Assembly (NCBI GenBank): GCA_964188305.1
Contig: OZ076893.1
Source of the DNA: Podarcis bocagei
Lineage: Eukaryota
DNA length: 64,000 nucleotides
Reading direction: 5' to 3' (one strand)
Below, piece after piece: positions 12,601-59,789 of the stretch. The stretch's first letter is position 1; each line of letters begins with the position of its first letter. The translations under genes were made by a program, and so were the position numbers. A model generated the notes under the pieces. The model did no database searches. It worked only from the letters and a program-made list of their open reading frames with translations, and was not told the DNA's origin.

Positions 12601-14000
12601 ATATTTAACTAAATAGTCTTTGAATTTCCTCCATTCCTCCTGGTGCTCCTCCTCCTTCTGGTCGCGGACTCTTCCGATGAGGTCGGCTAGCTCCGCAAAG
12701 TCCATCATCTTCATCTGCCATTCCTCCAGTATTGGCACTTCTTGTGTTTTCCAATTCTTGGCTAACAAAATTCTAGCTGCAGTTGTGGCATACAAAAACA
12801 ATCTAACATCTTTCTTGGGCAATTCCAAACCTGTTGTTCCAAGAAGAAAGGCCTCTGGTTTCTTAATAAATGTATATTTCAACATTTTTTTCAATTCATT
12901 ATAAATCTTCTCCCAGAAGTCTTTCACCTTGGGGCAGGTCCACCACATATGATAAAAGGTACCTTCTTTTTCTTTACATTTCCAACATAGATTATCACTA
13001 TTGTGATATATCTTTGCTAATTTTACAGGGGTTAAATACCATCTATACATCATTTTCATAATATTTTCCTTTAACACTGTACATGTTGGGAAAGAAACAT
13101 TCTGCACAGAAACAGTAAAGATGTTTGTACCTTTAAGAACAGTTTTTGTGAGCTCTGGGCTCATTGGTTGCAGCTGACCATGGCTACAAAAAGAGAAAAG
13201 CTGCAGTTTGAACTCTGCCTGCAGGAAAAACACCCACAAGCTTTGCTGTTTGTTGTTTTGAAATAAAGTCCTTATTTGATTTGGTTTTACACCGGTCTCG
13301 TGGTGTCACGGTCTTCTGTCATCTGCCACCAGTGGAAAATCCCCCTCTAACAGTACATGCAGTGAACTTGACCCCTTTCCTCCACAACCTTTCCCAGTCT
13401 TCACACATTATTTTATGTCCCACATCACTTGCCTTTTCTCCTTGCATCACATTCCCTAGCAAAGTAAACAGCAGGCTGTTTTGAAAGCCCTCATAACTTT
13501 GTGGTGAGAAGAGTTACTGGTTGTAGGGTTGTTGTTTTTAAGAGTCACTTTTGTTTTAATTTTGCTGTCTAACTTGCTTTATTATACAACCACAGCTGGA
13601 AAAAGAACTAACATATGAGAGATTGTCGATATGGACGAGTTCGGATATGATGCAGAAAAGGAAGGTGGAGCTTCACTTACCAAGGATCAAACTGGAAGAG
13701 AGTTTCGACCTCAAGTCCACCCTAAGCAGTATGGGGATGAAGGATGCTTTCATTCCAGGCCAAGCTAACTTCTTGGGAATGTCAAAAAAAGGCGACTTGG
13801 CTTTGTCAGAGGTGTATCACAAGTCCTTTGTGGAGATCAATGAAGAGGGCACTGAGGCAGCAGCTGCCTCAGCAGCCACCATTGTAATAAGGTCATCTCA
13901 GAAGCCCATAAAATTCGAAGCAAACCATCCTTTTATCTTCTTTATCAAGCACAAGGCAACAAAAAACACCCTCTTCTTGGGCAGATTCTCTTCTCCATAG
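3663..14000 (+). CDS. SERPINB10: Clade B serpin, SERPINB10/bomapin-like (8-exon type with CD-loop exon), ~394 aa
   Basis: Coding exons 3663-3827, 4639-4686 (CD loop [16 protein letters not shown]), 6273-6410, 7585-7702, 9210-9352, 10467-10634, 13596-14000, all AG/GT flanked, with canonical sizes 138/118/143/168. Motifs [43 protein letters not shown]; predicted P1-P1' Arg-Ser. SERPINB10 rather than SERPINB2 is inferred from the position directly upstream of SERPINB6/SERPINB1, as in the chicken cluster. Confidence 0.8.
3890..4140. mobile_element. Tc1/mariner (Tigger/pogo-like) MITE
   Basis: TIR CAGTGGTACCTTGGTTC / GAACCAAGGTACCACTG, TA flanks. Confidence 0.85.
4957..5470 (-). mobile_element. 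RTE-clade LINE 3' fragment
   Basis: Minus-strand ...WETLA...[19 protein letters not shown], the C2H2-type C-terminus typical of RTE elements. Confidence 0.8.
5019..5152. mobile_element. hAT-like MITE nested in the RTE fragment
   Basis: TIR TAAGGTTACCAG / CTGGTAACCTTA; 8-bp TSD TCTCAGCA / TCTTAGCA. Confidence 0.8.
5554..5657. repeat. (CATAA)n microsatellite
   Basis: Direct reading. Confidence 0.95.
5948..6188. mobile_element. Tc1/mariner-type MITE (same family as 11834)
   Basis: CAGTCATACCTTGG ... CAAGGTATGAT termini; internal hairpin GATTGGCTGCAGGAG...CTCCTGCAGCCAATC. Confidence 0.75.
7065..7150. mobile_element. Small hAT-like MITE
   Basis: TIR TAGCTGTCAAC / GTTGACAGCTA; related copies at ~28324-28467 and ~36841-37013. 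Confidence 0.65.
8091..8400. mobile_element. GC-rich hAT-like MITE
   Basis: CAGGGCTGTCTTA ... TAAGGCGGCCCTG; 8-bp TSD GTTTCTCC / GTTTGTCC. Confidence 0.75.
11834..12085. mobile_element. Tc1/mariner-type MITE
   Basis: CAGTCGTACCTTGGA ... TCCAAGGTACAACTG, TA flanks. Confidence 0.8.
12290..13490 (-). mobile_element. L1 LINE 3' fragment (ORF2 C-terminus) interrupted by a solo LTR
   Basis: Minus-strand YRWYLTP...[18 protein letters not shown] zinc-knuckle region typical of non-mammalian vertebrate L1. Confidence 0.85.
13084..13352 (+). mobile_element. Solo LTR
   Basis: TGTTGG...CTAACA ends, perfect 5-bp TSD GTACA (13079-13083 / 13353-13357), AATAAA at 13262. Confidence 0.8.
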
Positions 14001-14464
14001 AATGTGGTTGCCAATGTAATGAACCTACCAGTACATCCCATGGTAAACACACCCTCAAAAATAAAAAATGCATAAGAGAACTTCTTGCCCTTCCTCCCAA
14101 GTTAATGTTGACACTGGATTTGCCTCTCTTTCTCTCCTCTGCCAACAGCCATTTTGTGTCATGCCACACGCCCCATGGCAGCCATTTTGTGATTGGCACC
14201 ATAGCAGTTTCTCAAAATTCCAAATGTCCTCATTGGTCCAAAAAGGTTGGACCAATCTGAATATAAATGCTTAAGAGCAGGCTGAAATGCCATAGACCTC
14301 ACATTTAGGCCTCATGCTGTTTTAGGCATAACCTATATAAGCTTTTCTGCCTTCCTTCTGTTGCCCAAATCTGTCTCTGTACATGACAAGAGTGTGCAGC
14401 ATAACATTCTTAATTCTTCTCTAAATGCCAGTCATCATTGTCTGTAAAACATGGATTTTAAATC

Positions 14465-14470
14465 AATAAA
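14465..14470 (+). terminator. Poly(A) signal of the SERPINB10-like gene
   Basis: AATAAA ~465 nt after the stop codon; a proximal AATAAA also lies at 14060-14065. Confidence 0.55.
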
Positions 14471-14487
14471 TTTATTTTAGAAAATTA

Positions 14488-16475: not shown

Positions 16476-16698
16476 CAGTCATACCTCGGGTTGAAGTACC
16501 TTCGGGATAAGTATTTTCGGGTTGCGAGCTGCGGTGACCTGGAAGTAACAAGCATGTTACTTCCGGGTTTCGCCGCTCACGCATGCGCAGATGGTCAAAA
16601 TGACGTCACACGCATGCGCGGAAGCGGCGAATCGGGTTCGCTTCTGGATGCGAACGGGGCTCCGGAACGGATCCCGTTCGCATCCAGAGGTACCACAG
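16476..16698. mobile_element. Tc1/mariner-type MITE, unit 1 only
   Basis: TA-flanked CAGTCATACCTC ... GAGGTACCACAG; empty site GGCAAGTAAGC in units 2 and 3. Confidence 0.8.
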
Positions 16699-16959
16699 TA
16701 AGCGCATGCTCTTTGAACTGTCAACTGTCAACGATGCTGGGGATTATTATCGTGTTGTCCAGTCAGTTTGGTTCTTGTGTTCCTATGAGTGAGCTGTTGT
16801 CACTGACAAATGCTGAATAAACTTACACTGCCTTGGGCTTCTGACTTTTTCCGAACATTTAACGATCAGCGAATAGAAAGATCATCTACCCAAGCCACGC
16901 TGACACTAAGTAAAAGAATATGAGCTTTACCCTATAAACTGCATTGTCTGTATTAATGT

Positions 16960-17530: not shown

Positions 17531-18404
17531 GATGTTGTGTGTGTGTGTGGTTAAAAGCTGCCTCGTCTTGGACTGCTTTTGGTAAGCCGAGGAAGAAAAT
17601 CAATATCTGATTCTAACTTCCAGAAAGGTAGGCGTATTACGAGTGGCTTGCGCGCAACGAATGTTCTAGGAGCGCCTTAAAGGCTGCCAGCATCATTTTG
17701 CACAAAAAACGTCCAGGGTCTTAAAAGAGTCCATTGCATCATATACGCCTGCAAAAAAGTTTGTGCCATAACTGATGAAGCGGTTTCTTTTTTTCTGAAG
17801 TTCATGATGCGGTAAAAAAAAAAAACATGTCAGTGGTAACTACCAACTTAAGTCGTTGCTTACTGGTTTGCAGAGAGTAAGTCAGGTGGATTGCTTGGCA
17901 TCAGCGTCTGGGACTTCCTTTGTTGAGGAAGTAAGTAATCTGGGAGGGTCTCAGGGTGTTGTCACCTGTGGGACCTGCACTTCGGTGTACACTTCTGTCC
18001 TTTGAACAGCTGCATGACACAGGCAGAAATTTAATAGCTGCGCCTTTCCATACTGTGTTTCTCTACTGGGAAAGTCTTCACCTGCAGGATTTCTGCCTGC
18101 TGCACTCAGCTGTTAGCGCACAGGAGCTTTGCAAGGGGGGGGGGAGAGATAAAACTGACACTGGTTCCTGTTCTTTATTGGTGTTTGTTGGGTTTGCACT
18201 GAAAAATCTAATCATCTGCATAGCATGGAAGCAGTGGGTTTTTATGTTCCAGCTTGGTTGATATGCAGGTTGATATGCCCTTAGGACACACGTGTGGGAT
18301 CTGAAAACAAATGCTTAGGTTTGGGTTTTTTTCTGTAAAAGTGACCTCCGAGCGGACAAACTGGATGACTGTCTTCTCTGTGCTTGTTTCGTAGGTTATA
18401 AGAC

Positions 18405-20073
18405 ATGGACCGCCTCACTGCAGCAAACAGTGCCTTTGCCCTCAATCTGTTCAAGAAGCTAAGTCAAAATGATAATACAGCGAACATGTTTTTTTCTCCT
18501 TTGAGCATTTCTGCTGCTTTGACGATGCTCTCTCTGGGGGCGGCAGGGAACACTGCAGCCCAAATGGCAAAGGTATATCCAGATAAATACTATTAAGGGG
18601 ATGGGGGAGCTTGACTTTTGACTCTTAAATGAGGCATGCATGGTGCATCCTTTTCTTTGCAGCAGGTCAGGCTGAAATATGCATTTATTAGCGGGCCCTT
18701 AAGGCTACTAGTGAACTCCCGTTGCGCGGTCCCTGCTCCTGCCCACCTAGCTGTTCCAAAGCACGTCAAAATGCAAGTAAATAAATAGGTACCACTCCGG
18801 CAGGAAGGTAAACAGCGTTTCCGTGCGCTCTGCTGGTTTCACCAGAAGTGGCTTAGTCATGCTGGCCACATGACCTGGAAAAACTATCTGCGGACAAACA
18901 ACTCTGGGGTTGCGGTGCTCATCTTGCTTTACTGGCTGAGGGAGCCAACGTACAGCTTCCGGCTCATGTGGCCAGCGTGACTAAGCCGCTTCTGGCGAAC
19001 CAGAGCAGCACATGGAAATGCCGTTTACCTTCCCGCCGGAGCGGTACCTATTTATCTACTTGCACTTTGACGTGCTTTTGAACTGCTAGGTTGGCAGGAG
19101 CAGGGACCGAGCAACAGGAGCTCACCCAGTCACAGGGATTCGAACTGCTGACCTTTCACTCTCTTGTTTGCCAAAAGACGTGGATTTTCAACTGATAACA
19201 TGTTTTTTAGGATTACGTGGAGGCGGTTGGAGGATGGATGGCGGCTAACAGATTGAGGTTGAATCCTGACAAGACAGAAGTACTGTTTTTGGGGGACAGG
19301 AGGCGGGCAGGTGTAGAGGATTCCCTGGTCCTGAATGGGGTAACTGTGCCCCTGAAGGACCAGGTGCGCAGCCTGGGAGTCATTTTGGACTCACAGCTGT
19401 CCATGGAGGCACAGGTCAAATCTGCGTCCAGGGCAGCTGTTTACCAGCTCCATCTGGTACGTAGGCTGAGACCCTATCTGCCTGCGGACTGTCTCGCCAG
19501 AGTGGTGCATGCTCTGGTTATCTCCCGCTTGGACTACTGCAATGCACTCTACGTGGGGCTACCTTTGAAGATGACCCGGAAACTGCAATTAATCCAGAAT
19601 GCAGCAGCTAGACCGGTGACTGGGAGTGGCCGCCGAGACCATATAACACCGGTCTTGAAAGACCTGCATTGGCTCCCAGTACGTTTCCGAGCACAATTCA
19701 AAGTGTTGGTGCTGACCTTTAAAGCCCTAAACGGCCTCGGTCCAGTATATCTGAAGGAGCGTCTCCACCCCCATCATTCTGCCCGGACGCTGAGGTCCAG
19801 CGCCGAGGGCCTTCTGGCGGTTCCCTCATTGCGAGAAGCAAAGCTACAGGGAACCAGGCAGAGGGCCTTCTCGGTAGTGGCGCCCGCCCTGTGGAACGCC
19901 CTTCCAGCAGATGTCAAAGCGATAAACAACCACCTGACATTCAGGAGACATCTTAAGGCAGCCCTGTTCAGGGAAGTTTTTAACGTGTGATATTTTATTG
20001 TATTTTTGGTTTTTATGGAAGCCGCCCAGAGTGGCTGGGGAGGCCCAGCCAGATGGGCGGGGTATAAATAATA

Positions 20074-20127
<54 letters not shown>

Positions 20128-23100
20128 CTGTATTTAAATTACTTAACATTATCTGTTAACCATTTATCATCTTACAGGTGCTGTCTGTGACCAACGACGT
20201 CGAGTTTCACCAGGGATACGAGAAACTTATTTCTGAAATCAACAAGCCAGACACCAAGTACTTGCTTAGGCTAGCCAACAGGCTCTTTGGAGAAACATCC
20301 TATGAGTTTATTTCAGTAAGTTACATGGTTTACAAATATGCTAGAGAACAGGAAGTGGTCTCTGTTCAGATAGTGAACCGTGTTCTGTCGCAGATCAGAA
20401 ACGCAGCTAAGCACACACTATCCCTTCTGTACTTTCCAGTAAAACCTTCCATCAAACTGAAAGGGACATTTGAATTCGCAGCAGTGATCAGCTTGAGTCC
20501 AGGTGGCAGGTTGTACCAGCCAATCTACTTGGTGGATAGATTCATTTCTTTCTCTTTCCCCCTGTCCTTACTTGGCACCACTCGCACTGGATGCTTTTTG
20601 TAAGCTGCTCTTGTAAAGCTCCAAAACTGCAGGGTAGCTAATGCTGGATCATAACATTCTTTGTTTGGGAAAAGAGACTGCTTATGGGATGTTGGATCCC
20701 AAAGCACCCTTTTGTTTCTAGCATGTTGGCTCATGAATTTGGTCTAGCCTGCCCAGCCTTTTACAGAGGTCTGCCAACCCCCAAAACCATTGTTGACAGA
20801 AGCTTCAGAGGCAGTGAGCAGCAGATCAGAGTGCTCTCCATTTTGGTGACTTGCTTCCCCAGCAAGAAGCAGAATGAAGTACTCAGGAAATGGGAGGGAA
20901 TGCGACTACATTTTCTGAGCTCTTGACTATCTGCAGCCTGTGCTTCTCTCCTTCTCTCATTCGCATTTTTTTTTATATTGTGTAAATGATGGCATTGCAC
21001 TGGAAGGCAATTTCCCTTAGCATTTGCACGGGAGTTCACAGACCAGCACTACTGCATTTCCCACTGTGTGTTACATTTATGACATGCTTGTGAACTTCCA
21101 GGGACAGAACGGTAGACTAAGTGGAGCTTTTGCTAGATCAAGCCAAGAGGATAATTACATTTAAAAAACAACTGTAATACAACAGGTAGATGCGGTGGCG
21201 CAGCGGCAGCAGGAGGCCCCATTAACTAAAGTGATGCTTCAGGTTAAGAACAGTTTCAGGTTAAGAACGGACCTCCGGAATGAATTAAGTACATAACCCG
21301 AGGTACCACTGTACATTTTTAAAAGAACAACTGTAATATAGCAGGTAGTCGGCACTTTCCAAAGACTTACCAAATTTGGGGACGAATAAGTATTGCTTAA
21401 ATAACAGTTTTACTCCATAGAGAAACAGAAAGAGAAAATACCACATTGGAATTCATTATCCGCCTGCATTGAGCAGGATTGATACGGGGCAAATATTGGT
21501 AAGCATTTAGCATCCTGCATACAGACCTTTCATGTAGGACTCTCATATACAGTGGTACCTCGGGTTAAGTACTTAATTCGTTCCGGAGGTCCATTCTTAA
21601 CCTGAAACTGTTCTTAACATGAGGTACTACTTTAGCTAGTGGGGACTCTTACTGCTGCCGTGCTGCCGGAGCACGATTTCTGTTCTCAACCTGAAGCAAA
21701 GTTCTTAACCTGAAGCACTATTTCTGGGTTAGCAGAGTGTGTAACCTGAAGCGTATGTAACCTGAAGCGTATGTAACCCGAGGTACCACTGTATAAGAAT
21801 AAGACAATGATTGCTATGTGTATTCTTGAGCAAAAGAAGTTTGTTTGGGTCCGGTTCAGTCCATCTGTTTTGGCTGATAGGAATCTATTGCACATGCCAT
21901 GACCTTTTTCTTATCAACTGAAGTTAAATTAAGCATCTGCATACGTGTTTCACATCTTTCGGTATCTGAAAATGGAAGAAACATCCTTCTCTCCCTCTCT
22001 TTTCTGTGGGACAAAACCTGAATGAAATCAAAGTTTGTTTGTATATGATATATACAGATCCATATATAGCTTTTAATTCTGAAACATATTTGTTTAAGTC
22101 ATTCATAGACTCCAGCCAGAAATTCTATCGAGCAGGTCTAGAGAAACTAGACTTCATTAAAGCATCAGAGGATTCCAGAAAATACATTAATAATTGGGTG
22201 GAAGAACAGACAGCAAGTGAGTAGCAAATTCTTGGGCTTCCATATTGTCTGAGGTTTAGTTCTTAAAATATGAGTTTGTGTCTAAAAAATATGTACTTAT
22301 TAAAACAGCTCTTTAATCCCTCTTCAAGGTAAAATCCAAAATCTGCTCACCCCAGGACTAATTGACTCCAGTACAAGGCTGGTCTTGGTGAATGCTATCT
22401 ATTTCAAGGGAAACTGGGCAAATCAGTTCCTCAAAGATGACACTGAGGAAAGGCCGTTCAAAGTTAGCAAGGTATGAGGTGGGAAATAATGTGAAGAACA
22501 TCACTGAGCACAGTCTTTATCATTTTGATTACATACACACATTCTGATATTTGGAGTGTTCCCTCCTTCTGTTTTTTTCTTTCATCAGTTGACCAGTTGG
22601 GATTTCCCTTCCCACCATGTCCTAAGGACATTCTTTTGCAGAGATAACAGAGGATGAACAGTACACAAGGTGCAGAGCAGCTCAAGCAATGCAATAGAAA
22701 AGATTACATGCTTAAAACGAAATTCTTCTCCGTTTGCAGAATGAAAGCAAACCGGTGCAGATGATGTTCAAGGAAGCTAAATTCAACATGACATACATAT
22801 CGGAACTTCGCACCCAAATTCTTGAGATTCCTTATGTTGATAACGAGCTCAGCATGATCATCCTGCTTCCTGATGAGATTGCAGATAATTCTACAGGCCT
22901 GGAAAAGGTGAGGCATTTTTGATAAGAATAAAACCATCTAAATTCTTGCCCGTAAAAATTGCCCTTGTATGACGAGAGCATTCTAGCTTCCAACTTCTAA
23001 GTGATTCTTCCAAGTGCCCAGTGTAACTTATTATATTGTTGGCATCTGTCTGTCTTGAGAGACAATGGAGTGTGCCTTCAGAGGTGAAGTCAAACCACCA

Positions 23101-26100
23101 TGCTAGCAGCGCCGAAATGACCTCCTTGGGGTCAGTGCCGAATTTACGTATAAGCTAAACAAGCTGTAGCTTAGGGTCCCACTATTTTGGGGGCCCCCCC
23201 CCCCAAATATGTAAGGGGAAAAAAACCTAGATGTACTTTTCCAAAATATAAGATAAAAAACAAATAAAATAAAACCTACACATAGCAACAGTGTTTTGTG
23301 TTGTATAGGCTCCTATAATGTAAGTAATGCGTCCCGCCTGCCAGCCTGCTCCCTAAAATATCACTGGTTTGCTCATTTCTATGTATGTGGTGCCTGCATT
23401 CTGCATGTGCAAATAGCTTTAGATACCTTTTAGGTCCATAAATTACTATACTGGAGAATTTCCTTCATTCTTTCAGCTAAAATATAGGTATACAATTTAT
23501 AAACATTGTTCAACATGCTGACAGCTTCTAGGAGACACAGGTGAGAGCCGAGTACAGGGTGGGGGAACCAAAGGTGGATAAATTACCCCAGAAGGAGCAA
23601 TATAGCTGTTTATATTTCTATAAGCATAGTTAAGTCTGCCAGTGTTCTGTCTTATTCAGAAAGATGGAAGGCATAAAAGCAAGTTGAGCAGAAAGGAATT
23701 CTACCCGGACAGACAGGGCAATTGTAAAACAAGTTTACCGTATTTTTCGCCCTATAGGACGCACCGGCCCATAGGATGCACCTAGATTTTTTGGGGGGGG
23801 AATAAAGGGAAAAAAATTATTTCCCCCCCCCCAGGCGCAGGGCTGGGGCGGGAGAAGCCCGAGCTTCCCCCGACCCCAGCCCCCAGAATGGGAGCCAGAG
23901 CGATGCCAAAGGTGAGCGCACCGGCATCGCTCTGGGACCTTGCGCGGCTGGGGGCGGGGGGAGCTGGAGCTTCCCCCGACCCCAGCCCCCCGAACGGGTT
24001 GGAGAGCGATGGCGAAGGTGCTCGCACCTTCGGCATCACTCTGGGACCTTGCGCGGCTGGGGGCGGGGGGAGCCGGAGCTTCCCCAGTCCCCAGAGCAGG
24101 TCCGAGAGTGCTGGCGAAGGTGAGCGCACCTTCGCCATCACTCCCAGAGCTTGCGGGGCTGGGGGTGGGGGAAGCCCAAGCTGGGGGTGGGGGAGGTTGA
24201 GCCGCGCAAAGTCCCAGAGCGATGGCGAAGGTGCGCGCACCTTCGGCATCGCTCTCCGACCCGTTCGCCGGGCTGGGGACGGGGAAAACTCCGGCTCCCC
24301 CCGCCCCCAGCCGCGCAAGCTCCGAGAGCGATGGCGAACGTGCGCGCACCATCGCCATCGCTCTCTGACCTGTTCTGGGGGCTGCGGTCGGGGGAAGCTC
24401 CGGCTTCCCCCGCCCCCAGCCGCGCAAGCTCCGAGAGCGATGGCGAACGTGCGCGCACCTTCGGCATCGCTCTCCGACCCGTTCGCGGGGCTGGGGACGG
24501 AGGAAACTCCGGCTTCCCCCACCCCCAGCCCCGCAAGCTCTGGGAGTGATGGCGAAGGTGCGCTCACCTTTGCCATTGCTCCCGGAGCTTGCAGGGGCTG
24601 GGGGTGGTGGAAGCCCGAGCTTCCCCCGCCCCCAGTCCCCAGAGCAGGTCGGAGAGCACTGGCGAAGGTGCGCGCACGTTCGCCATCGCTCTCGGAGCTT
24701 GCGCGGCTGGGGGCGGGGGAAGCCGGAGCTTCCCCCGACCGCAGCCCCCAGAACAGGTCAGAGAGCGATGGCGATGGTGCGCGCACGTTCGCCATCGCTC
24801 TCGGAGCTTGCGCGGCTGGGGGCGGGGGGAGCCGGAGTTTTCCCCGTCCCCAGCACGGCGAACGGGTCGGAGAGCGATGGCGATGGTGCGCGCACCTTCG
24901 CCATCGCTCTGGGACTTTGCGCGGCTCGACCTCCCCCACCCCCAGCTTGGGCTTCCCCCAGTCCCCAGAGCAGGTCCGAGAGTGCTGGCGAAGGTGAGCG
25001 CACCTTCGCCATCACTCCCAGAGCTTGCGGGGCTGGGGGTGGGGGAAGCCCAAGCTGGGGGTGGGGGAGGTCGAGCCGCGCAAAGTCCCAGAGCGATGGC
25101 GAAGGTGCGCGCACCTTCGGCATCGCTCTCCGACCCGTTCGCCGGGCTGGGGACGGGGAAAACTCCGGCTCCCCCCGCCCCCAGCCGCGCAAGCTCCGAG
25201 AGCAATGGCGAACGTGCGCGCACCTTCGGCATCGCTCTCCGACCCGTTCGCGGGGCTGGGGACGGAGGAAACTCCGGCTTCCCCCACCCCCAGCCCCGCA
25301 AGCTCTGGGAGTGATGGCGAAGGTGCGCTCACCTTTGCCATTGCTCCCGGAGCTTGCAGGGGCTGGGGGTGGTGGAAGCCCGAGCTTCCCCCGCCCCCAG
25401 TCCCCAGAGCAGGTCGGAGAGCGCTGGCGAAGGTGAGCGCACCTTCGCCATCACTCCCAGAGCTTGCGGGGCTGGGGGTGGGGGAAGCCGGAGTTTCCCC
25501 AGCCCCCAGAACAGGTCAGAGAGCGATGGCGATGGTGCACGCACCTTCGGCATCGCTCTGGGACCTTGCGCGGCTGGGGGGATAGCTTCCTGAAGCCTGG
25601 AGAGCTGGGGGGGGGGAGTGCGTCCTATAGGGCGAAAAATACGGTAAGTGATGTACATGGAGTCATTTGAGTCACTGTGGATCCAGTGAAAATGGTTTTA
25701 TGTAAGAAATGTGAGGATTTATATATGCAGCCAGGATTTCCTTTTTTCCTTGAATGCCTTGTATTTGTCTTATTTTAGCTGGAGAAAGAAATGACCTATG
25801 AGAAACTCAAGGATTGGATTAACCCTGAGAAGATGGACCTAACTGAAGTTCAGCTGTCTCTACCCAAATTTAAACTGGAGGAAAAATACGACCTGAAGCC
25901 TGTTCTGAGCAGCATGGGAATGGCTGAGGCGTTTGACCCAAGCAAGGCGGATTTCTCCAAGATGTCTCCCAACAATGACTTGGTTTTGTCAGAGGTTGTT
26001 CACAAATCCTTTGTAGAGGTAAACGAAGAGGGAACTGAGGCTGCTGCTGCTACTGCTCCTGTTATGAATTTCCTGTGTTATAATTTTGTGCTGAGTTTCA

Positions 26101-26183
26101 CAGCCGACCATCCCTTTCTCTTCCTCATTCGGCACAACAAAACACAAAGCCTTCTCTTCTATGGTAGGTTTTGCTCTCCCTGA
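18405..26183 (+). CDS. SERPINB6: SERPINB6-like paralogue A (379 aa; RCL ...APVMNFL|CYNFV)
   Basis: Exons 18405-18572, 20178-20315, 22099-22216, 22329-22471, 22740-22907, 25779-26183; open frame, no CD-loop exon, C-terminus GRFCSP; near-identical to copy C outside the RCL. Confidence 0.88.
18712..18900 (+). mobile_element. Sauria SINE fragment
   Basis: Similar to 278-627; same position as the fuller copy at 43256. Confidence 0.8.
18901..19155 (-). mobile_element. Sauria SINE fragment, inverted
   Basis: Reverse complement of the SINE body. Confidence 0.85.
19217..20122 (+). mobile_element. Young 5'-truncated L2-clade LINE (RT C-terminal region intact)
   Basis: 257-aa stop-free ORF with [41 protein letters not shown]; (TAT)n tail; absent from copies B and C. 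Confidence 0.9.
21550..21791. mobile_element. Tc1/mariner (Tigger-like) MITE, copy A only; a partial inverted copy lies at ~21190-21311
   Basis: TIR CAGTGGTACCTCGGGTTA, TA TSD; empty site CTCTCATATATAAGAATAAG in copy B. Confidence 0.85.
23738..25644. mobile_element. 1.9-kb non-autonomous Tc1/mariner-superfamily element filled with a palindromic ~109-bp minisatellite
   Basis: Perfect TIR CCGTATTTTTCGCCCTATAGGACGCAC, TA TSD (23736-37 / 25645-46); empty site in copies B and C; 16 palindromic cores inside. Confidence 0.88.
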
Positions 26184-26185
26184 AG

Positions 26186-26402
26186 CAAGCTAACTTCTCA
26201 GGAATGTCAAAGAAAAGTGACTTGGCTTTGTCAGAGGTGTATCACAAGTCCTTTGTGGAGATCAATGAAGAGGGCATTGAGGCAGCAGCTGCCTCAGCAG
26301 CCACCGTTGTAATAAGGTCATCTCAGCATCCCATAAAATTAGAAGCAAACCACCCTTTCATCTTCAAGCACCCTCTTCTTTGGCAGATTCTCTTTGCCAT
26401 AG
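26186..26402 (+). pseudogene. Duplicated 3' half of the SERPINB10-like last exon fused directly after the copy A stop codon
   Basis: Homologous to 13761-14000 ([30 protein letters not shown]); no splice acceptor; hinge T->I; 12-nt plus 11-nt deletions (frameshift); followed by a copy of the SERPINB10-like 3' UTR. Confidence 0.9.
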
Positions 26403-28759
26403 AATGGGGTTGCTGATGCAATGAACCCACTGGTACCTCCCATGGTAAACACACTCTCAAAAATAAAAAATGCATAAGACAACTTCCTGCCCTTCCTGCT
26501 AATTTAATGTTGACACTGGCTTTGCCTTTCTTTCTCTCCTCTGCCAACAGCCATTTTGTGTCAGACCACACGCCCCATGGCAGCCATTTTGTGACTGGCG
26601 CCCATAGCAGTTTCTCAAAATTCCACATTTCCTCATTGGTCCAAAAAGTTTGGCAATCTGAGTATAAATGCTTAGGAGCAGGCTGATATACCACAGGCAT
26701 CACATTGAGGCCTAATGCTGTTTTAGACATAACCTATATAAGCTTTTCTGCCTTCCTTCTGTTACCCAAATCTGTCTCTGTACATGACAAGTGTGCAGCA
26801 TCACATTCTTAATTCTTCTCTAAATGCCGGTCATTATTGTCTGTAAAACATGCATTTTAAAGCAAGAAATGTAGTTTTGAAACTTATGTTTCCACTGTGA
26901 AAACAGTGCAGCCCACTTGCATTAAAATAATTGACAACACTCCTGTTTGTTTGTTTGTTTATTTATTTTATATATTCATCATCTCACCAACTGGTTAGTA
27001 CAAAGAAAGAGCAATTAGACGGAACCTGTTCCAAACTGGAGGATATATTCCGGACCAGTTGGGATAGAATGGGAAATGCATGCAAAATCCAGAGGCTTCT
27101 GGGAGAACGTCATTTGACAAGTTCTAATTGAGTCAAGTCTCTGCTCTTCAGAAATGGTTAATGTTCCTATACGTATTTTCTTCAAGTGTCGTGATCTGAG
27201 TTCTCCTTTTGCATCACTGATAGGCACATTCTGGTACCTCTGTTTCCTCACGGCTTGCTTGCATTTCAGGCATTAGAAGTTTGCTCTCTGCATTTATGCA
27301 CCAGCTGTCCGTTATGCTTAACCTTACTCAGTTGCAACACAGCATCACCAGGGTCAGAATCCTAACTGGTACCCGTCCTCGTTTCCCAATAGCAATGGTC
27401 TTAGAAACTATAGCAGGATCTCCTTCTCAGGCCTCAACATGGTTCTAACAGGGCATCATAATCTCACCCAGGTAGTCTGACCTTTGTTTTAAGCATCGTA
27501 GTTGTGTGTATTGGGCAACAAATTGAAGGCATGAATACGTTTATAACCCAGGTTCCCCACATGGTTATAATAATTTATTATTTATACCCCGCCCATCTGG
27601 CTGGGTTTCCCCAGCCACTCTGGGCGGCTTCCAAAAGAATATTAAAATACTATGATACATCAAACATTAAAAGCTTCCCTAAACAGGGCTGCCTTCAGAT
27701 GTCTTCTAAAAGTCTGGTAGTTGTTGTTCTCTGGTCGCTTTCAGTAGATCAAATGGTGTCCCGCCGTGCTTTCATTTGAAGAGATGGGACTCCCTCAACA
27801 CTCCTCATAAACACACTCTTATGGGCAGGACACCCAAATCCCAACACTTCTCCGGAATAGTCCACAGATTAATCACCACATACCCAGAGATTCCTCTGAA
27901 CTGTACAAGCTTACCCAATCTTTCCGGAGAATATTGCAGTCATCAAAAAATCAGACTGGATGTTCACATCCTTCCCCCAGCATGTCCGGGAAAAAACAAC
28001 AACACTCAGTATGGCCAGAAATATTCAAGCCTGCATATCTAGAATATACACCTCAAAGGAGCTGATTTCACCCAAAGGTCATAGTGGTTCCTTGGTTTAC
28101 AGAAGTACGTGCGTCGTCTCTTTTTTCAGGTTGTATTTTCTAGGGATCAATTCCATTTGTTGCGAGACATTCATGTTCGTAAAATAACCCAAGGCTCCCC
28201 GCACGCACAACCTCTCTCACTACCAAGGAAATGCAATAAATCAGTGTTATGTATTGAGTTTAACACATTTTATGTTACAAGGCGCATTCTAACCAATCAC
28301 AGAAGCGTTGGTAGATGAACACTTAGCTGTCAACCTTCCCTTTTTTTGCGGGAAATTCCCTTATTCCAACGCCGTTTCCCGCTGCTATCCCGGATTGTTA
28401 GATATCCCATAGACTGTCCCCTGGACTGGTGAGGCTGCTGATCCCTTATTTTCTAATCTGACAGCTATGGACCTGCGTTCTAATGGCAAGTAAGCACATG
28501 CTCTTTCAACTGTCAAACTGTCAACGGTCAGTTTATCCTCGGCATTATTATCGTGTTGTCCAGTCAGTTTGGTTCTTGTGTTCCTATGAGTGAGCTGTTG
28601 TCACTGACAAATGCTGAATAAACTTACACTGCCTTGGGCTTCTGACTTCTTCCGAACATTTAACAATCAGCGAATAGAAAGAGGATCTATCCAAACGACG
28701 CCGACACTAAGTAAAAGAATATGAGCTTTACCCTATAAACTGCATTGTCTGTATTAATG

Positions 28760-29300
28760 TCAGGCTCCCCGGGTTTGCGCAGCCAGGCGCCTTTACTCGG
28801 GAGTAAGCCTGCGGGGATTACTTCTGCAGCGCCAACAACCAGCGCGAGCAGGGCGCAATTGCGCTTTCGCAGCGCCACCTTCCTGCTCCGAGAGGCTTCT
28901 CCGTTTCTGAAAAAGCAGGCGGCGATGGGGAAAAAGAAGACGGGCAGCGGCTTCGTTTCCTCCTGCTGGGCATGTGCGAGCCGTTCTGCACATGCTCAGT
29001 GGCAATGGAAGCCGGCCGCAAACTTGGGGGCTCGAAGCTGCGGCTCCTTCCCCTCCCCACCCTATTAGGTTCCTGGATAGCGGCTGAGTCAGGGGCTGAG
29101 TCACAGGAAGGAGCGCCTCCCCTGGCAGGACGGGATGGTTTCGTACCTCCTACTCGGGTTTCCCGTCGCCACTCGGTGCCTCTCTTTGCTCGCAGCCGGA
29201 GCCCTTCCTGCGATCCGTGCGTAACAGCCGCGCGCATTTCTCACGGTACAGTCCTCTTCTCTTTGGGTTGCCATTTGTACCTGTTGCGTGTCTTTTAAAG
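28760..29300 (+). promoter_or_regulatory. CpG-island promoter/exon 1 of SERPINB6 copy B
   Basis: Paralogous to 16960-17530; tandem GCTGAGTCA at 29083-29104. Confidence 0.68.
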
Positions 29301-29875
29301 GAAATGCGGTGGGTCCTGATGTTGTCTGGGACTTCCTTTGGTGAGGAAGTAATTAATCTGGGAGGGTCTCAGGGTGTTGTCACCTGTGGGACCTGCACTT
29401 CTGTGCACACTTCTGTCCTTTGAACAGCTGCACGACACAGGCAGAAATTTAATAGCTGCGGCTTTCCATACTGTGTTTCTCTACCAAAGTTGTTGAGCTT
29501 TCTTTTTAGGATTGAAGTTGCTGAGCATTTTTTTTTTTTTTTTGGATTTTACCCCAGGACAGAAGGGGCTGAATTAAACCCCCGAACCAGACTTTGGACA
29601 TGCCTGCCCTAATATTGGTAGAAGGAGTTTTGAAAGATTTGTACATCTTAGTGCCAGTAGTCACAATATAGTTATAAAAGCATCAAACAGGACTTCATGC
29701 AAGCTTGATCCCGTTCAGGACACGGTTTATCAAACATAGACTTAATTGCGAAAGTCAGGCTATTATAGCTGTTGGCTTGCTAACTTAATTCTGCGGCCTG
29801 AGGCTTTAATAGTCCTGTTTTTGAGGCTAGAATTATGCAGTGGGGAGGGACAACAGGCTCTCAAATGATGCTTTA

Positions 29876-30120
29876 CAGTGGTATCTCGGGTTACATACAC
29901 TTCAGGTTACATACGCTACAGGTTACAGACTCCGCTAACCCAGAAATAGTACCTCGGGTTAAGAACTTTGCTTCAGGATGAGAACAGAAATAGTGCAGCG
30001 GCGGCGGCACGGCAGCAGCAGGAGGCTCCATTAGCTAAAGTGGTGCTTCAGGTTAAGAACAGTTTCAGGTTAAGAACGGATCTCCGGGATGAATTAAGTA
30101 CTTAACCCGAAGTACCACTG
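29876..30120. mobile_element. Tc1/mariner (Tigger-like) MITE
   Basis: Same family as 21550, opposite orientation, TA flanks. Confidence 0.8.
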
Positions 30121-30515
30121 TATGTCCCAAAGGGGGTAATGTGGCATATAAGATGCAATAGACTTTTAATTTAAAGCTGATCTTCTTAGAAATCAAGTGA
30201 GGGCAAATTACTGTCTGCTGGGCATTTTTGCAAATTACTGTCTGCTGGCCATTGCTTTCATCTAAAGAAATGTAGCATGTGATTGACGGATCCTCTGTGG
30301 GCTGCAGCCTCCCCCACACCAGAAAACGGTGGGTGGGTGGCATTTTGGAGAGCATGAAAATGTTCCAGCATGGGAATTACAGGTTGATATGCATTTGGAT
30401 ACGTGTGGGATCTGAAAACAAATGCTTAGGTTTGGGTTTTTTCTTGTAAAAGTGACCTCCGAGCGGATAAACTGGATGACTGTCTTCTCTGTGCTTGTTT
30501 CGTAGGTTATAAGAC

Positions 30516-33500
30516 ATGGACCGCCTCACTGCAGCAAACAGTGCCTTTGCCCTCAATCTGTTCAAGAAGCTAAGTCAAAATGATAATACAGCGAACGTGT
30601 TTTTTTCTCCTTTGAGCATTTCTTCTGCTTTGACGATGGTCTCTCTGGGTGCGGCAGGGAGCACTGCAGCCCAAATGGCAAAGGTATATCCAGATAAATA
30701 CTATTAAGGGGAGGGGGGAGCTTGACTTTTGCCTCCATGCATGGTGCTTCCTTTTCTTTGTAGCAGGTCAGGCTGAAATATGCATTTACAGTATTTCACT
30801 CTCTTGTTTGCTGAAAGGCATGGATTTTTCAACTAATACAGTTTTTAAGGAGTACGTAGATAAATGTATTTAAATTACTGCACTTAACATTATCTGTTAA
30901 CCATTTATTGTCTTACAGGTGCTGTCTGTGACCAACGACGTCGAGTTTCACCAGGGATACGAGAAACTTATTTCTGAAATCAACAAGCCAGACACCAAGT
31001 ACTTGCTTAGGCTAGCCAACAGGCTCTTTGGAGAAACATCCTATGAGTTTATTTCAGTAAGTTACATGGTTTACAAATATGCTAGAGAAGAGGAAGTGGT
31101 CTCTGTTCAGATAGTGAACCGTGTTCTGTCACAGATCAGAAACGCAGCTAAGCACTCACTATCCCTTCTGTACTTTCCAGTAAAACCTTCCATCAAACTG
31201 AAAGGGACATTTGAATTCGCAGCAGTGATCAGCTTGAGTCCAGGTGGCAGGTTGTACCAGCCAATCTACTTGGTGGATAGATTCATTTCTTTCTCTTTTC
31301 CCCTGTCCTTACTTGGCACCAGGACATTAGCTGGGATAATAATAATATTTATTATTTATACCCTGCCCATATGGCTGGGTTTCCCCAGGCACTCTATGCA
31401 GCTCCCAGCAGAACATTAAAACAGAAGAAAACTACAAACATTAAAAACTTCCCTAAACAGGTCTGCCTTCAGATGTTTCTAAATTCTAAAAGTCATATAG
31501 TTGCTTATTTCCTTGACATCTGATGGAAGGGCATTCCAAAGGGCGGACTCCACTACCAAGAAGGCCCTCTGCCTGGTTCCCTGTAGCTTAGCTTCTCGCA
31601 GGGAGGGAACCACCGGAAGGCCCTTAGCGTCCGGGCTGAATAATGGGGGTGGAGACGCTCCTTCAACTATACAGAGCCGAGGCTTTTTAGGGCTTTAAAG
31701 GTCAGCTCCAACACTTTTGACTTGTGCATGGAAATATACTGGGAACCAATGTAGGTCTTTCAGGACGGGTGTTATACTGTCTCGTCGGCCACTCTGAAGA
31801 TGCACCTCTTTACCCTATGGCCTATGTGTTTTCAGGACCCAGGCCATTGCTGTGACTTTTTAATATATGTAATACGTACAGAATTTTAAATTGTTGTAAT
31901 CTGTCATGGGACCTGGAAGGCAAAGTCCCCCAGCGTTTGCACAAAGAGTTCACAGACCAGCACTGCTGCATTTCCCCATCTGTTTATGGGCCTTTGAATC
32001 CAGGCCATTATAGAGAAATGTGTGTTAATTTTATGACATGCTTGTGAGCTTCCAGGGACAGAATGTTAGACTAAGAGGAGCTTTTCCTAGATCAAGCCAA
32101 GAGGATAATTACATTAAAAAAACAACTGTAATACAACAGGTAGTTGGCACTTTCCAAAGAGTAACCAAATTTGGAGACAAATAAGTATTGCTTACGTAAC
32201 GTTTTTTCCTCCATAGAGGAATGGAAAGAAAAAACACCACATTGGAATTCATTATCCGCCTGCATTGAGCAGGATTGATACAGGGGCAAATCTTGGTAAG
32301 CATTTAGCATCCTGCAAATGGACCTTTCATGTAGGACTCTCATATATAAGAATAAGACAAGGATTGCTATGTATATTCTTGAGCAAAAGAAGTTTGTTTG
32401 GGTCAGGTTCAGTTTATCTGTTTTGGCTGATAGGAATCTATTGCACATGCCATGAGCTTTTTCTTATCAACTGAAGTTAAATTAAGCATCTGCATACGTG
32501 TTTCACATCTTTCGGTATCTGAAAATGGAAGAAACATCCTTCTCTCCCTCTCTTTTCTGTGGGACAAAACCTGAATGAAATCAAAGTTTGTGTGTATATG
32601 ATATATACAGATCCATATATAGCTTTTAATTCTGAAACTTATTTGTTTAAGTCATTCATAGACTCCAGCCAGAAATTCTATCGAGCAGGTCTAGAGAAAC
32701 TAGACTTCATAAAAGCATCAGAGGATTCCAGGAAATACATTAATAATTGGGTGGAAGAACAGACAGCAAGTGAGTAGCAAATTCTTGGGCTTCCATATTG
32801 TCTGAGTTTTACTTCTTAAAATATGAGTTTGTGTCTGAAAAATATGTTCTTTAATCCCTCTTCAAGGTAAAATCCAAAATCTGCTCGCCCCAGGAATAAT
32901 TGACTCCAGTACAAGGCTGGTCTTGGTGAATGCTATCTATTTCAAGGGAAACTGGGCAAATCAGTTCCGCAAAGATCTCACTGAGGAAACGCCGTTCAAA
33001 ATTAGCAAGGTATGAGGTGGGAAATAATGTGAAGCACATCACTGAGCAAAGAGTCTTTATCGTTTTGATTAAATTACATACATTGTGATATTTGGAGTGT
33101 TCCCTCCTTCTGTTTTTTTTCTTTCATCAGTTGACCAAGTAGGATTTACCTTCCCACCATGTCCTAAGGACATTCTTTTGCAGAGACAACAGAGGATGAA
33201 CAGTAAACAAGGTGCAGAGCAGCTCAAGCAATGCAATAGAAAAGATTATATGCTTAAAACAAAATTCTTCTCCATTTGCAGAATGAAAGCAAACCAGTGC
33301 AGATGATGTTCAAGAAAGCTAAATTCAACATGACATGGATATCGGAACTTCGCACCAAAATTCTTGAGATTCCTTATGTTGAAAACGAGCTCAGCATGAT
33401 CATCCTGCTTCCTGATGAGATTGCAGATAATTCTACAGGCCTGGAAAAGGTGAGGCATTGTTGCTGAGAATAAAACCATCTAAATTCTTGCCCATAAAAA

Positions 33501-34839
33501 TTGCCCTTGTTGGTACATGACCAGAGCATTCTAGCTTCCAACTTCTACGTGATTCTTCCAAGTGCCCAGTGTAACTTATTATATTGTTGGCATCTGTCTC
33601 AAGAGACAATGGAGTGTGCCTTCAGAGGTGAAGTCAAACCACCATGCTAGCAGCGCCGAAATGACCTCCTTGGGGTCAGTGCCGAATTTACGTATAAGCT
33701 AAACAAGCTATAGCTTAGGGTCCCACTATTTTGGCCCCCCCCAAAAAAAAAATGTAAGGGGAAAAAACCCTAGATGTACATTTCCAAAATATAAGATAAA
33801 AAACAAATAAAATAAAACCTACACATAGCAACAGTGTTTTGTGTTGTATAGGCTCCTGTAATGTAAATAATGGGTCCTGCCTGCCAGCCTGCTCCCTAAA
33901 ATATCACTGGTTTGCTCATTTCTATATATATGGTGCCTGCATTCTGCATGTGCAAATGGCTTTAGATACCTTTTAGGTCCATTACTATACTGTATAATAG
34001 TTTGGAGAATTTTCTTAATTCTTTCAGCTAAAATATAGGTATACAATTTATAAACATTGTTCAACATGCTGACAGCTTCTAGGAGCCACAGGTGAGAGCT
34101 GAGTACAGGGTGGGGGGAACCAAAGGTGGATAAATTACCCCAGAAGGAGCAATATATGTTTAATATAGTGGTTATATTTCTATAAGCATAGTTAAGTCTG
34201 CCAGTGTTCTGTCCTATTCAGAAAGATGGAAGGCATAAAAGCAAGTTGAGCAGAAAGGAATTCTACCCGGACAGACAGTGCAATTGTGAAACAAGTTTGT
34301 TTAAGTGATGTACATGGAGTCATTTGAGTCACTGTGGATCCAGTGAAAATGGTTTTATGTAAGAAATGTGAGGATTTATATATGCAGCCAGGATTTCCTT
34401 TTTCCTTGAATGCCTTGTGTTTGTCTTATTTTAGCTGGAGAGAGAAATGACCTATGAGAAACTGAAGGATTGGATTAACCCTGAGAAGATGGACCTAACT
34501 GAAGTTCAGCTGTCTCTACCCAAATTTAAACTGGAGGAAAAATACGACCTGAAGCCTGTTCTGAGCAGCATGGGAATGGCTGAGGCGTTTGACCCAAGCA
34601 AGGCAGATTTCTCCAGCATGTCTCCCAACAATGACTTGGTTTTGTCTGAGGTTGTTCACAAATCCTTTGTAGAGGTAAATGAAGAGGGAACTGAGGCTGC
34701 TGCTGCTACTGCTGCTGTAATGACTAAGCGGCGTGCTAGGATTGTGCCCTGTGTCACAGCCGACCATCCCTTTCTCTTCTTCATTCGGCACAACAAAACA
34801 CAAAGCCTTCTCTTCTATGGTAGGTTTTGCTCTCCCTGA
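30516..34839 (+). CDS. SERPINB6: SERPINB6-like paralogue B (379 aa; RCL ...AAVMTKR|RARIV)
   Basis: Exons 30516-30683, 30919-31056, 32652-32769, 32867-33009, 33282-33449, 34435-34839; intact frame and splice sites. Confidence 0.88.
31337..31795 (-). mobile_element. L2 LINE 3' fragment
   Basis: Degenerate reverse complement of ~19620-20080. Confidence 0.75.
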
Positions 34840-34841
34840 AG

Positions 34842-35069
34842 CAAGCTAACTTCTCAGGAATGTCTAAGAAAAGTGACTTGGCTTTGTCAGAGGTGTATCA
34901 CAAGTCCTTTGTGGAGATCAATGAAGAGGGCATTGAGGCAGCAACTGCCTCAGCAGCCACCGTTGTAATAAGGTCATCTCAGCATCCCATAAAATTAGAA
35001 GCAAACCACCCTTTCATCTTCAAGGCAACAAAAAGCACCCTCTTCGTTGGCAGATTCTCTTTGTCATAG
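34842..35069 (+). pseudogene. Duplicated 3' half of the SERPINB10-like last exon fused directly after the copy B stop codon
   Basis: Same junction (CCCTGAagCAAGCTAAC), same hinge T->I change and same 12-nt deletion as the fragment at 26186. Confidence 0.9.
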
Positions 35070-37304
35070 AATGGGGTTGCCAGTGCAGTGAACATACTGG
35101 TACCTCCCATGGTAAACACACTCTCAAAAATAAAAAATGCATAAGAGAACTTCCTGCCAAGTTACTGTTGACACCAGCTTTGCTTCTCTTTCTCTCCTCT
35201 GCCAACAGCCATTTTGTGTCATGCCACACGCCCCATGGCAGCCATTTTGTGACTGGCGCCCATAGCAGTTTCTCAAAATTCCAAATTTCCTCATTGTTCC
35301 AAAAAGGTTGGCAATCTGAATATAAATGCTTAGGAGCAGGCTGAAATACCACAGGCATCACATTGAGGCCTAATGCTGTTTTAGACATTATCTCTATAAG
35401 CTTTTCTGCCTTCCTTCTGTTGCCCAAATCTGTCTCTGTACAAAAGTGTGCAGCATCACATTCTTAATTCTTCTCTAAATGCTAGTCATCATTGTCTGTA
35501 AAACATGCATTTTAAAGCAAGAAATGTAGTTTTGAAAATTATGTTTCCACTGTGCAAAACAGTAGTTTTTTAAAGCTCTTATCTTCTCTCCCTGTGCCAC
35601 ATGACACGGAGTGCAGCCCACTTGCATTAAAATAATTGACAGCACTCTATTTATTTATTTTATATATTCATCATCTCACCAGCTGGTTAGTACAAAGAAA
35701 GAGCAATTAGACAGAACCTGTTCCAAACTGGAGGATATATTCCGGACCAGTTGGGATAGTATGGAAAATGCATGCAAAATCCAGAGGCTTCTTGGAGAAC
35801 GTCCTTTGACAAGTTCTAATTGAGTCAAGTCTCTGCTCTGCAGAAATGGTTAATGTTCCTATACGTATTTTCTTCAAGTGTCGTGTTCTGAGTTCTCCTT
35901 CTGCATCACTGATAGGCACATTCTGGTACCTCTGTTTCCTCACGGCTCGCTTGCATTTCAGGCATTAGAAGTTCACCCTCTGCATTTATGCACCAACTGT
36001 CCATTATGCTTAACCTTACTCAGTTGCAACACAGCATCACCAGGGTCAGAATCCTAACTGGTACCCGTCCTCGTTTCCCAATAGCAATGGTCTTAGAAAC
36101 TATAGCAGGATCTCCTTCTCAGGCCTCAACATGGTTTTAACAGGGCATCATAATCTCACCCAGGTAGTCTGACCTTTGTTTTAAGCATCGTAGTTGTGTG
36201 TATTGGGCAACAAATTGAAGGCATGGATATCATTTATTACCCAGGTTCCCCACATGGTTAACAACAATCTGGTCACTTTCAGTAGATCAAATGGTGTCCC
36301 GCCGTGCTTTCATTTGAAGAGATGGGACTCCTTCAACACTCCTCATAAACACACTCTTATGGGCAGGACACCCAAATCCCAACACTTCTCCGGAATAGTC
36401 CACAGATTAATCACCACATACCCAGAGATTCCTCTGAACTGTACAAGCTTACCCAATCTTTCTGGAGAATATTGCAGTCATCAAAAAATCAGACTGGATG
36501 TTCACATCCTTCCCCCAGCATGTCCGGGAAAAAAAACACAACAACACTCACTATGCCCAGAAAGATTCAAGCCTGCATATCTATATCATACACCTCAAAG
36601 TGATCTCACCCTAAGATCATAGTGGTTCCTTGGTTTACAGAAGTACGTGCGTCGTCTCTTTTTTCTGGTTGAATTTGTTGCTGGACATTTGTGCTGTTGG
36701 GATAACCTTAGGCTCCCCGCACACACAACCTCTCTCACTACCAAGGAAATGCAATAAATCAATGTTATGTATTGGGTTTAACACATTTTATGTTACAAGG
36801 CACGTTCTAACCAATCATATAGTGTTTGTAGATGAACACTTAGCTGTCAACCTTCCCTTTTTTGCGGGAAATTCCCTTATTCCAGCACCATTTCCCGCTG
36901 CTATCCCGAATTGTTAGATATGCCGTAGACTGTCCCCGGGACAGGTGAAGCTGCTGATCTCTTATTTTCGAGGCTGCTGATCCCTTATTTTCAAATCTGA
37001 AAGTTGACAGCTATGGGCGAACGTTCTAATGGCAAGTAAGCGCATGCTCTTTCAACTGTCAAACTGTCAACAGTCAGTTCATCCTCGGCATTATTATCGT
37101 GTTGTCCAGTCAGTTTGGTTCTTGTGTTCCTATGAGTGAGCTGTTGTCACTGACAAATGCTGAATAAACTTACACAGCCTTGGGCTTCTGACTTTTTCCG
37201 AACATTTAACGATCAGCGAATAGAAAGAGGATCTATCCAAGCGACGCCGACACTAAGTAAAAGAATATGAGCTTTACTCTATAAACTGCATTGTCTGTAT
37301 TAAT

Positions 37305-37880
37305 GTCAGGCTCCCCGGGATTGCGCGGCCAGGCGCCCTTACTCGGGAGTAAGCCTGCGGGGATTACTTCTGCAGCGCCAACAACCAGCGCGAGCAGGGC
37401 GCAATTGCGTTTTCGCAGCGCCACCTTCCTGCTCCGAGAGGCTTCTCCGTTTCTGGAAAAAGCAGGCGGCGATGGGGAAAAAGGCGTACCGCCCGGCAAA
37501 GGCAACGCACAGCGGCTTCGTTTCCTCCTCCTGGGCATGTGCGAGCCGTTCTGCACATGCTCAGTGGCAATGAAAGCCGGCAGCAAACTTGGGGGGCTCG
37601 AGCCTGCGGCTCCTTCCCCCCCCCCCGCCTCGCCACCCTATTAGGTTCCTGGAGAGCGGCTGAGTCAGGGGCTGAGTCACAGGAAGGAGCGCCTCCCCTG
37701 GCAGGACGGGATGGTTTCGTTTCCCCTTCTCTGGTTTCCCGTCGCCACTCGGTGCCTCTCTTTGCTCGCAGCCGGAGCCCTTCCTGCGACCCGTGCGTAA
37801 CAGCCGCGCCCATTCCTCCCGGTACAGTCCTCTTCTCTTTGGGTTGCCATTTGTACCTGTTGCGTGTCCTTTAAAAGAAA
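37305..37880 (+). promoter_or_regulatory. CpG-island promoter/exon 1 of SERPINB6 copy C
   Basis: Paralogous CpG island; tandem GCTGAGTCA at 37659-37680. Confidence 0.7.

Positions 37881-41385: not shown

Positions 41386-41388
<3 letters not shown>

Positions 41389-41424: not shown

Positions 41425-41426
<2 letters not shown>

Positions 41427-59736: not shown

Positions 59737-59789
<53 letters not shown>

Follow-up and report, generated by a model that had tools for sequence, protein, structure and literature searches.

Two of three SERPINB6-like serpin copies in a Podarcis bocagei tandem array continue, directly behind their stop codons, into the last exon and 3′ untranslated region of a SERPINB10-like neighbour

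The DNA analysed here, referred to as the window, is a stretch of 64,000 nucleotides from contig OZ076893.1 of the Podarcis bocagei assembly GCA_964188305.1; it contains neither N nor a masked stretch. Comparison of its six-frame open stretches with one another and with Pfam revealed five clade-B serpin genes, all on the + strand. These are an upstream SERPINB10-like gene (B10L), three SERPINB6-like (B6-like) copies termed A, B and C, and a fifth gene, G5. SERPINB6 and SERPINB10 are plausible labels for these genes and not statements of orthology. The subject of this report is the sequence directly behind the stop codons of copies A and B, which derives from the last exon and the 3′ untranslated region (UTR) of B10L. 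The genes are located as follows:

First coding exon near 3.6 kb, last exon 13596-14000, + strand: B10L, the upstream serpin gene
ATG 18405, stop 26181-26183, + strand: copy A, B6-like
ATG 30516, stop 34837-34839, + strand: copy B, B6-like
ATG 42949, stop 48360-48362, + strand: copy C, B6-like
54.5-61.0 kb (54474-61034), + strand: G5, the fifth gene

Every one of the five genes has six coding exons tiling the Pfam Serpin profile PF00079 from 2 to 370. Protein searches were performed exon by exon and frame continuity was judged from coordinates. By this approach, the complete serpin domain (PF00079 2-370) was covered by the six translated exons in copy A and likewise in B10L, and copies B, C and G5 matched exon by exon. 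The exons of copies A, B and C measure 168, 138, 118, 143, 168 and 405 nt, giving 379 codons each; all six coding exons are open in the three copies, and the exon borders are of the GT/AG type with consistent phases. The two last coding exons that matter for the following analysis are:

13596..14000, + strand: last coding exon of B10L; stop TAG at 13998-14000; Pfam Serpin 237-370, E = 6.2e-45
25779..26183, + strand: last coding exon of copy A; TGA at 26181-26183; Pfam Serpin 237-370, E = 2e-48; spliced RNA contigs begin at 25777-25779 after exon 5 sequence

The nearest solved structures were leukocyte elastase inhibitor, PAI-2, MENT and SERPINB3/4 for exon 6 of copy A, and PAI-2 and MENT for exon 6 of B10L, all of them clade-B serpins. 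No SERPINB6 chain was among the solved-structure matches listed in these single-exon searches. An exact-product look-up of the exon 6 open reading frame (ORF) of copy A (25791-26180) in public assemblies yielded nothing on record.

Copies A, B and C are alike through ...CTCTCCCTGAA. After this, copy C continues with CAATGGG into unique DNA, whereas A and B read G-CAAGCTAACTTC, which is the last exon of B10L from position 13761 onward. In copy A, the TGA at 26181-26183 is followed by an A (26184), a G (26185) and, from 26186, by CAAGCTAACTTC. From 34837 copy B has letters identical to the copy A junction, so that both copies read TGA-A-G-CAAGCT (26181-26191 and 34837-34847). In copy C, the TGA at 48360-48362 is followed by ACAATGGG, and the four-way alignment showed no similarity to A, B or B10L after 48363. 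The raw letters and this alignment bear out an earlier sequence-only reading of the window, according to which A and B switch to the SERPINB10-like last exon from 13761 within a few bases of the stop codon while C has a unique UTR. Given a divergence of about 9%, the breakpoint can be resolved only to 26184-26186:

26184..26186, + strand: junction of copy A; the A at 26184 is common to copy C, the G at 26185 is of unclear origin, and the C at 26186 is the first B10L-homologous base

A CAA microhomology at this site, put forward in the same reading as a possibility, keeps that status. As the joining mechanism, however, it was rejected as unsupported in the form stated, because a simple CAA-mediated join does not predict the extra G (26185) in TGAA-G-CAAGCT. 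The closeness of the breakpoint to the stop codon is partly a matter of survivorship, since a break inside the ORF would leave a truncated copy.

The extent of the borrowed segment was determined by self-BLAST. The stretch 13761-14487 aligned with 26186-26886 and with 34842-35541, each over 728 columns with 87.9% identity and E = 0, which excludes chance. Together with the letters at the junction, these alignments agree with the earlier proposal that the duplication kept the whole SERPINB6 ORF and exchanged its 3′ UTR for the coding exon and UTR of the neighbour. The segment, its two derivatives and the native UTR comprise the following features:

13761..14487, + strand: source segment; final 240 nt of the last B10L exon together with the 3′ UTR of that gene, with AATAAA at 14060 and 14465
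26186..26402, + strand: former B10L coding sequence behind copy A; about 217 nt, out of frame with copy A, with a 23-nt deletion at 26369/26370; stranded RNA depth 18-27
26403..26886, + strand: former B10L 3′ UTR behind copy A; AATAAA kept at 26462-26467, distal signal changed to AAGAAA at 26864-26869
26921..26926, + strand: ATTAAA, candidate distal poly(A) signal of copy A; a GT-rich run follows, and contigs of the two RNA data sets X3 and X12 both end at 26932
34840..35541, + strand: junction of copy B (A, G) and borrowed segment; 12-nt deletion at the deletion spot of copy A, AATAAA at 35129, ATTAAA at 35626 just past the segment
48363..48770, + strand: native B6-like 3′ UTR, present only in copy C; first AATAAA at 48741

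Read in the B10L frame, 26183-26398 still matches Pfam Serpin 292-351 (E = 1.8e-17). The borrowed exon fragment lacks the first 165 nt of the exon and its splice acceptor. The alignment and a hexamer scan also upheld the description of the poly(A) signals given previously: the proximal AATAAA of B10L (14060) is retained at 26462 and 35129, and the distal one (14465) reads AAGAAA in both A and B. A third hexamer, ATTAAA, is found at 15076, 26921 and 35626, just outside the segment as it had been delimited before. Behind copy A, a 70-codon ORF (ATG 26204 to 26413) spans the former hinge and bait-loop region; there is no evidence of its translation.

Self-BLAST further showed that the region is built of three head-to-tail units whose colinear blocks are 87-98% identical, and the three-way alignment concurs:

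13761-26185, + strand: unit 1; fragment of the B10L exon (in this unit belonging to the intact gene), intergenic DNA, promoter and noncoding exon of copy A, copy A
26186-34841, + strand: unit 2; B10L fragment, intergenic DNA, noncoding exon of copy B ending at 29245, copy B
34842-48363, + strand: unit 3; B10L fragment, intergenic DNA, copy C

The order along the array is B10L, copy A, junction, copy B, junction, copy C and native downstream DNA, and each unit has its own promoter region and noncoding first exon. The donors of this exon (17461/17462, 29245/29246 and 37821/37822) and the acceptors directly before 18395, 30506 and 42939 are kept in all three units. For copy B, splicing from 29245 to 30506 (10 nt before the ATG; GT..AG) was seen in 9 reads of the stranded bulk RNA run X24 and in 23 reads of the single-cell RNA run X22, and the splice joint 30683>30919 was also backed by RNA reads. 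Private insertions are present in each unit. The left breakpoint lies within the last coding exon of B10L at 13760/13761, where the B10L exon itself is intact and continuous, and the right breakpoint lies 1-2 nt past the stop codon of the B6-like gene. B10L is unbroken at 13760/13761 and copy C passes uninterrupted into unique DNA after 48363, which leaves the two identical junctions as the sole new joins. Homology is not confined to the borrowed exon: about 4.5 kb of B10L-downstream DNA (13761-18246) lies behind both A and B and extends as far as the following copy's promoter and first exon, which argues for tandem duplication of a 9-13 kb unit and not for an insertion. These comparisons support the view that the array is a head-to-tail triplication generated by tandem segmental duplication with a novel end-to-start junction.

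Across 686 sites of the borrowed segment, B10L was the odd one out at 42, the fragment behind A at 16 and the fragment behind B at 16. The ungapped divergence amounts to about 9% between B10L and the fragments and to about 6% between the two fragments, which also carry nested deletions (23 nt and 12 nt) at the same spot with a common start. The two borrowed segments are thus more alike (about 96%) than either is to B10L (about 91%). The fragments of A and B are accordingly sisters, which points to a single origin of the junction and to its later copying by a second duplication. The duplications would be old events rather than recent polymorphisms. The units resemble one another in a mosaic fashion, copy B being closer to A within and at the end of intron 5 and closer to C in the bait loop, as would fit unequal exchange and gene conversion inside the array.

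A run search with sampled words of 25900-26900 returned 20 runs with shares of 0.54-0.62, which come from 7 studies and carry 7 organism labels; small contig sets (62-145 million letters) behaved as transcriptomes. Reads were placed on 25650-31400 at 97% identity, the start being chosen to skip the repeat in intron 5 of copy A. In X24, the first mate was on the - strand throughout, as on the exons of copy B, and the reads are therefore in RNA sense. The X24 depth along the last exon and the borrowed segment was:

25842-26033: 50.6
26034-26225: 27.4
26226-26417: 17.9
26418-26609: 0.31
Beyond 26609, up to the repeats: 0

Between 24 and 27 X24 reads were present over 26194-26306 and 18 at 26339. 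Sense reads continue out of exon 6 past 26185/26186 and extend at least about 180 nt further, or up to about 230 nt as judged by the depth bin. In the reads over the junction neither B-specific letters (26209, 26288) nor B10L-specific letters (26202-26222) were flagged, which identifies these reads as A-like and not as cross-mapped B10L or copy B. In X12, which has another organism label, a contig at 26135-26224 spans the junction, 51 of its letters lying on one side and 39 on the other, and a contig at 26195-26348 shows no mismatch. X22 reached the same limit as X24 at low depth. In spliced contigs of X3 and X12, exon 6 is preceded by exon 5 sequence, and these contigs consequently represent RNA. 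Both sets also contain A-specific contigs at 26568-26932 with 2 mismatches each, and their word depth in X12 is similar to that of the exon. Within the interval used for read placement, the depth was zero at 26994-27377 in all runs. The two doubts that the sequence-only reading had raised against itself, a junction without read support and transcripts ending before the SERPINB10-derived segment, are answered by the X12 contig across the copy A junction and by the stranded X24 reads continuing into 26186 onward.

These data support transcription of the borrowed segment as the 3′ UTR of an A-like copy. The segment is in use by default, because the next poly(A) signal lies within it. Exaptation, in the sense of a selected function, and immediate post-transcriptional divergence of the new copies, both of which had been suggested from the sequence, can at most be inferred.

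Regarding the 3′ ends, X24 and X22 stop short of 26568, where X3, bearing the same organism label, provides coverage at 99% identity. This places the 3′ end in X24 and X22 at about 26340-26568, an interval that contains the AATAAA at 26462. From the contigs, a long form probably ends near 26932-26990, past the ATTAAA at 26921 and before the GT-rich run. No poly(A)-tailed reads were listed in this read placement.

We regard the following sequence of events as very probably the best explanation of the locus as a whole, that is, of the origin by duplication, the array and the borrowed UTR in A and B. A non-homologous tandem duplication would have copied a block with its left end inside the last coding exon of B10L and its right end 1-2 nt past the B6-like stop codon, and joining would have brought the first bases of the block right behind this stop codon. 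A third unit, with a copied junction, would later have been produced by unequal exchange between the first two, and only the last copy, C, keeps the ancestral 3′ UTR. The RNA data show that transcription of an A-like copy runs past the stop codon into about 217 nt of dead B10L coding sequence, which is out of frame, devoid of a splice acceptor and marked by deletions. Judging from the hexamers and the ends of coverage, the transcript probably extends into what was the B10L UTR and terminates at the inherited AATAAA, some 280 nt past the stop codon, or, in some samples, at the ATTAAA about 740 nt past it. The borrowed tail may putatively change the regulation of the mRNA.

Several observations weigh against this explanation. 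Letters matching no copy of the window occur in the RNA at 25814 (A), 25851 (G), 26042 (C), 26289 (T) and 26339 (G), in four runs and partly at intermediate frequency, and at four sites unique to the reference copy A (25786, 25949, 25991, 26124) the RNA carries the letter of B and C. Only 4-16 reads cover the private bait-loop region of copy A at 26009-26042. Moreover, X24 coverage is lost at about 26340-26420, coinciding with the indel-rich, poorly conserved stretch at about 26370-26430; at the 97% identity threshold, reads may have failed to map here, so that the drop need not mark a true end. The interval 26349-26567 is bridged by no read or contig, and the contigs are strandless. Read placement on 25650-31400 stops before the tail of copy B, and the highest share in any run was 0.62, so that no run contains the whole stretch. 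Together, the non-reference letters and the low bait-loop depth indicate that the transcribed gene is either an A-like allele or an unsampled paralogue of other animals or lineages, with reads of the copy C type mixed in, and not demonstrably the reference copy A. The non-reference letters suggest divergent alleles or an extra copy in the sequenced animals.

If the borrowed segment were inert intergenic debris, A and B would be silent or end elsewhere, and the RNA signal would come from cross-mapped transcripts of B10L or copy C. This would be in line with the mixture of haplotypes or copies among the exon 6 reads, about 30% of which carry the C letter at 25831, with the fall in depth from 60 (26165) to 24 (26194) across the junction, and with the 95-96% identity of the former coding part to B10L over 26216-26316. 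The reads themselves speak against it: the several adjacent differing sites at 26202-26222 did not reveal B10L letters at 97% identity, only one of three fixed differences matches B10L (26306), the sequence of copy C cannot be aligned past 26185, and the 90-nt RNA contig at 26135-26224 spans the junction. We therefore consider this interpretation improbable. Even less probable is an assembly artefact, in which the junctions would reflect a misjoin or a collapsed or expanded repeat. Arrays of units 90-96% identical are indeed hard to assemble, and the limited share of sampled words in the listed runs would be compatible with such an error. However, the two junctions lie 8.66 kb apart in diverged flanks (A and B are 84-99% identical per 100-column window, and their indels and bait loops differ), every unit carries private insertions, and the junction is bridged by a contig of an independent run with another organism label.

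An equally slight chance is given to the use of the B10L fragment as coding sequence, either as an alternative bait-loop exon reached through a cryptic splice site or through translation of the 70-codon ORF, leading to a chimeric or mini serpin. The fragment retains the hinge and bait-loop coding region with an open frame starting at an ATG, and alternative bait-loop exons exist in serpin genes of invertebrates. Against such a use, the acceptor and the first 165 nt of the B10L exon were left out of the duplication, the 23-nt deletion shifts the frame in the fragment of copy A, and no splice joint into the fragment was reported, the reads being continuous from exon 6. The C-terminal third of a serpin is not known to fold alone.

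Within the preferred explanation, namely tandem duplication with a borrowed 3′ UTR, the tail could be more than a passive by-product. With about 700 nt inherited from the 3′ end of the B10L mRNA, it might place A and B under the microRNA or RNA-binding-protein control of B10L, the choice between the short (26462) and the long (26921) tail might differ by tissue or lineage, and the tract of low divergence at 26098-26399 (about 1.7% between A and B vs about 6% further on) might reflect selection on the tail. We regard this extension as doubtful. Outside the bait loop, identity between A and B is about 98-99% over 25645-26399 and 34302-35055, which take in the final part of intron 5, exon 6 and some 215 nt beyond the junction; further on, divergence is about 6% or more. 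None of the 214 aligned former coding sites shows a substitution private to the fragment behind A. Constraint as the main reading of the low A-B divergence across the junction was rejected, as the tract includes the end of intron 5 and the units are mosaic. In that part of the intron, 10 sites unite A and B against C, and a single site separates A from B. Because intron sequence is included in the tract, gene conversion or unequal exchange is the simpler cause.

Tandem duplications with intragenic ends are documented to give rise to chimeric transcripts and novel UTRs and to recruit sequence that has regulatory effects, as described in a Drosophila yakuba survey (Rogers et al., 2017; PMC5460883). 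As in the duplications reported there, a head-to-tail copy with its ends in or beside genes has fused the 5′ part of one transcription unit to other sequence. Compared with the cases in that survey, the lizard locus differs in that the coding sequence of the recipient is untouched and only the UTR is chimeric, in that the donor piece is former coding sequence within a vertebrate serpin cluster, and in that the event is old and re-duplicated rather than a segregating polymorphism. The array also resembles clade-B (ov-serpin) clusters expanded by tandem duplication, with adjacent genes in one orientation, a common exon plan (118-nt and 143-nt exons) and differences mainly in the bait loop. In contrast to the bait-loop diversification of such clusters, the point of interest here is the duplication breakpoint and the resulting 3′ UTR. 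With AATAAA at 26462 and ATTAAA at 26921 in one terminal exon, and with some runs showing the proximal form only and others also the distal one, the tail resembles alternative polyadenylation at tandem signals; unlike in that situation, short and long forms were obtained from different runs and organism labels.

A literature search on SERPINB6 duplication in lizards retrieved no relevant paper. As chimeric UTRs from tandem duplication are well documented, no new mechanism is added, and the locus is a tidy example of a known, ordinary type of event and of modest interest. What it offers is a base-resolved vertebrate case in which a tandem duplication spared the coding sequence and gave the new copies a 3′ UTR from the dead coding exon of a neighbour. 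Native (copy C) and swapped (A and B) states stand side by side in one array, which could serve as a natural experiment on UTR exchange and paralogue expression.

Some further features of the units were noted. Unit 1 contains an insertion of about 490 bp (14480-14996) between the distal AATAAA of B10L and the DNA further downstream, which units 2 and 3 lack. It is flanked by 26-nt inverted arms (14480-14505 and 14971-14996) that are 77% complementary, and looks like a small terminal inverted repeat (TIR) element inserted after the duplication. Intron 5 of copy A harbours a 1.9-kb array (23738-25644) of units of about 110 bp that is lacking in copies B and C. An intergenic block (15400-16120, 27280-27984 and 35970-36520) is 97-99.7% identical across the three units, compared with about 90-95% nearby, and may represent a recent gene conversion tract or a conserved element; an interspersed repeat within it (27567-27732) attracts very high RNA depth from elsewhere in the genome. 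Downstream of the array, G5 is an intact-looking clade-B serpin gene with the same six-exon plan as the others and a different bait loop.

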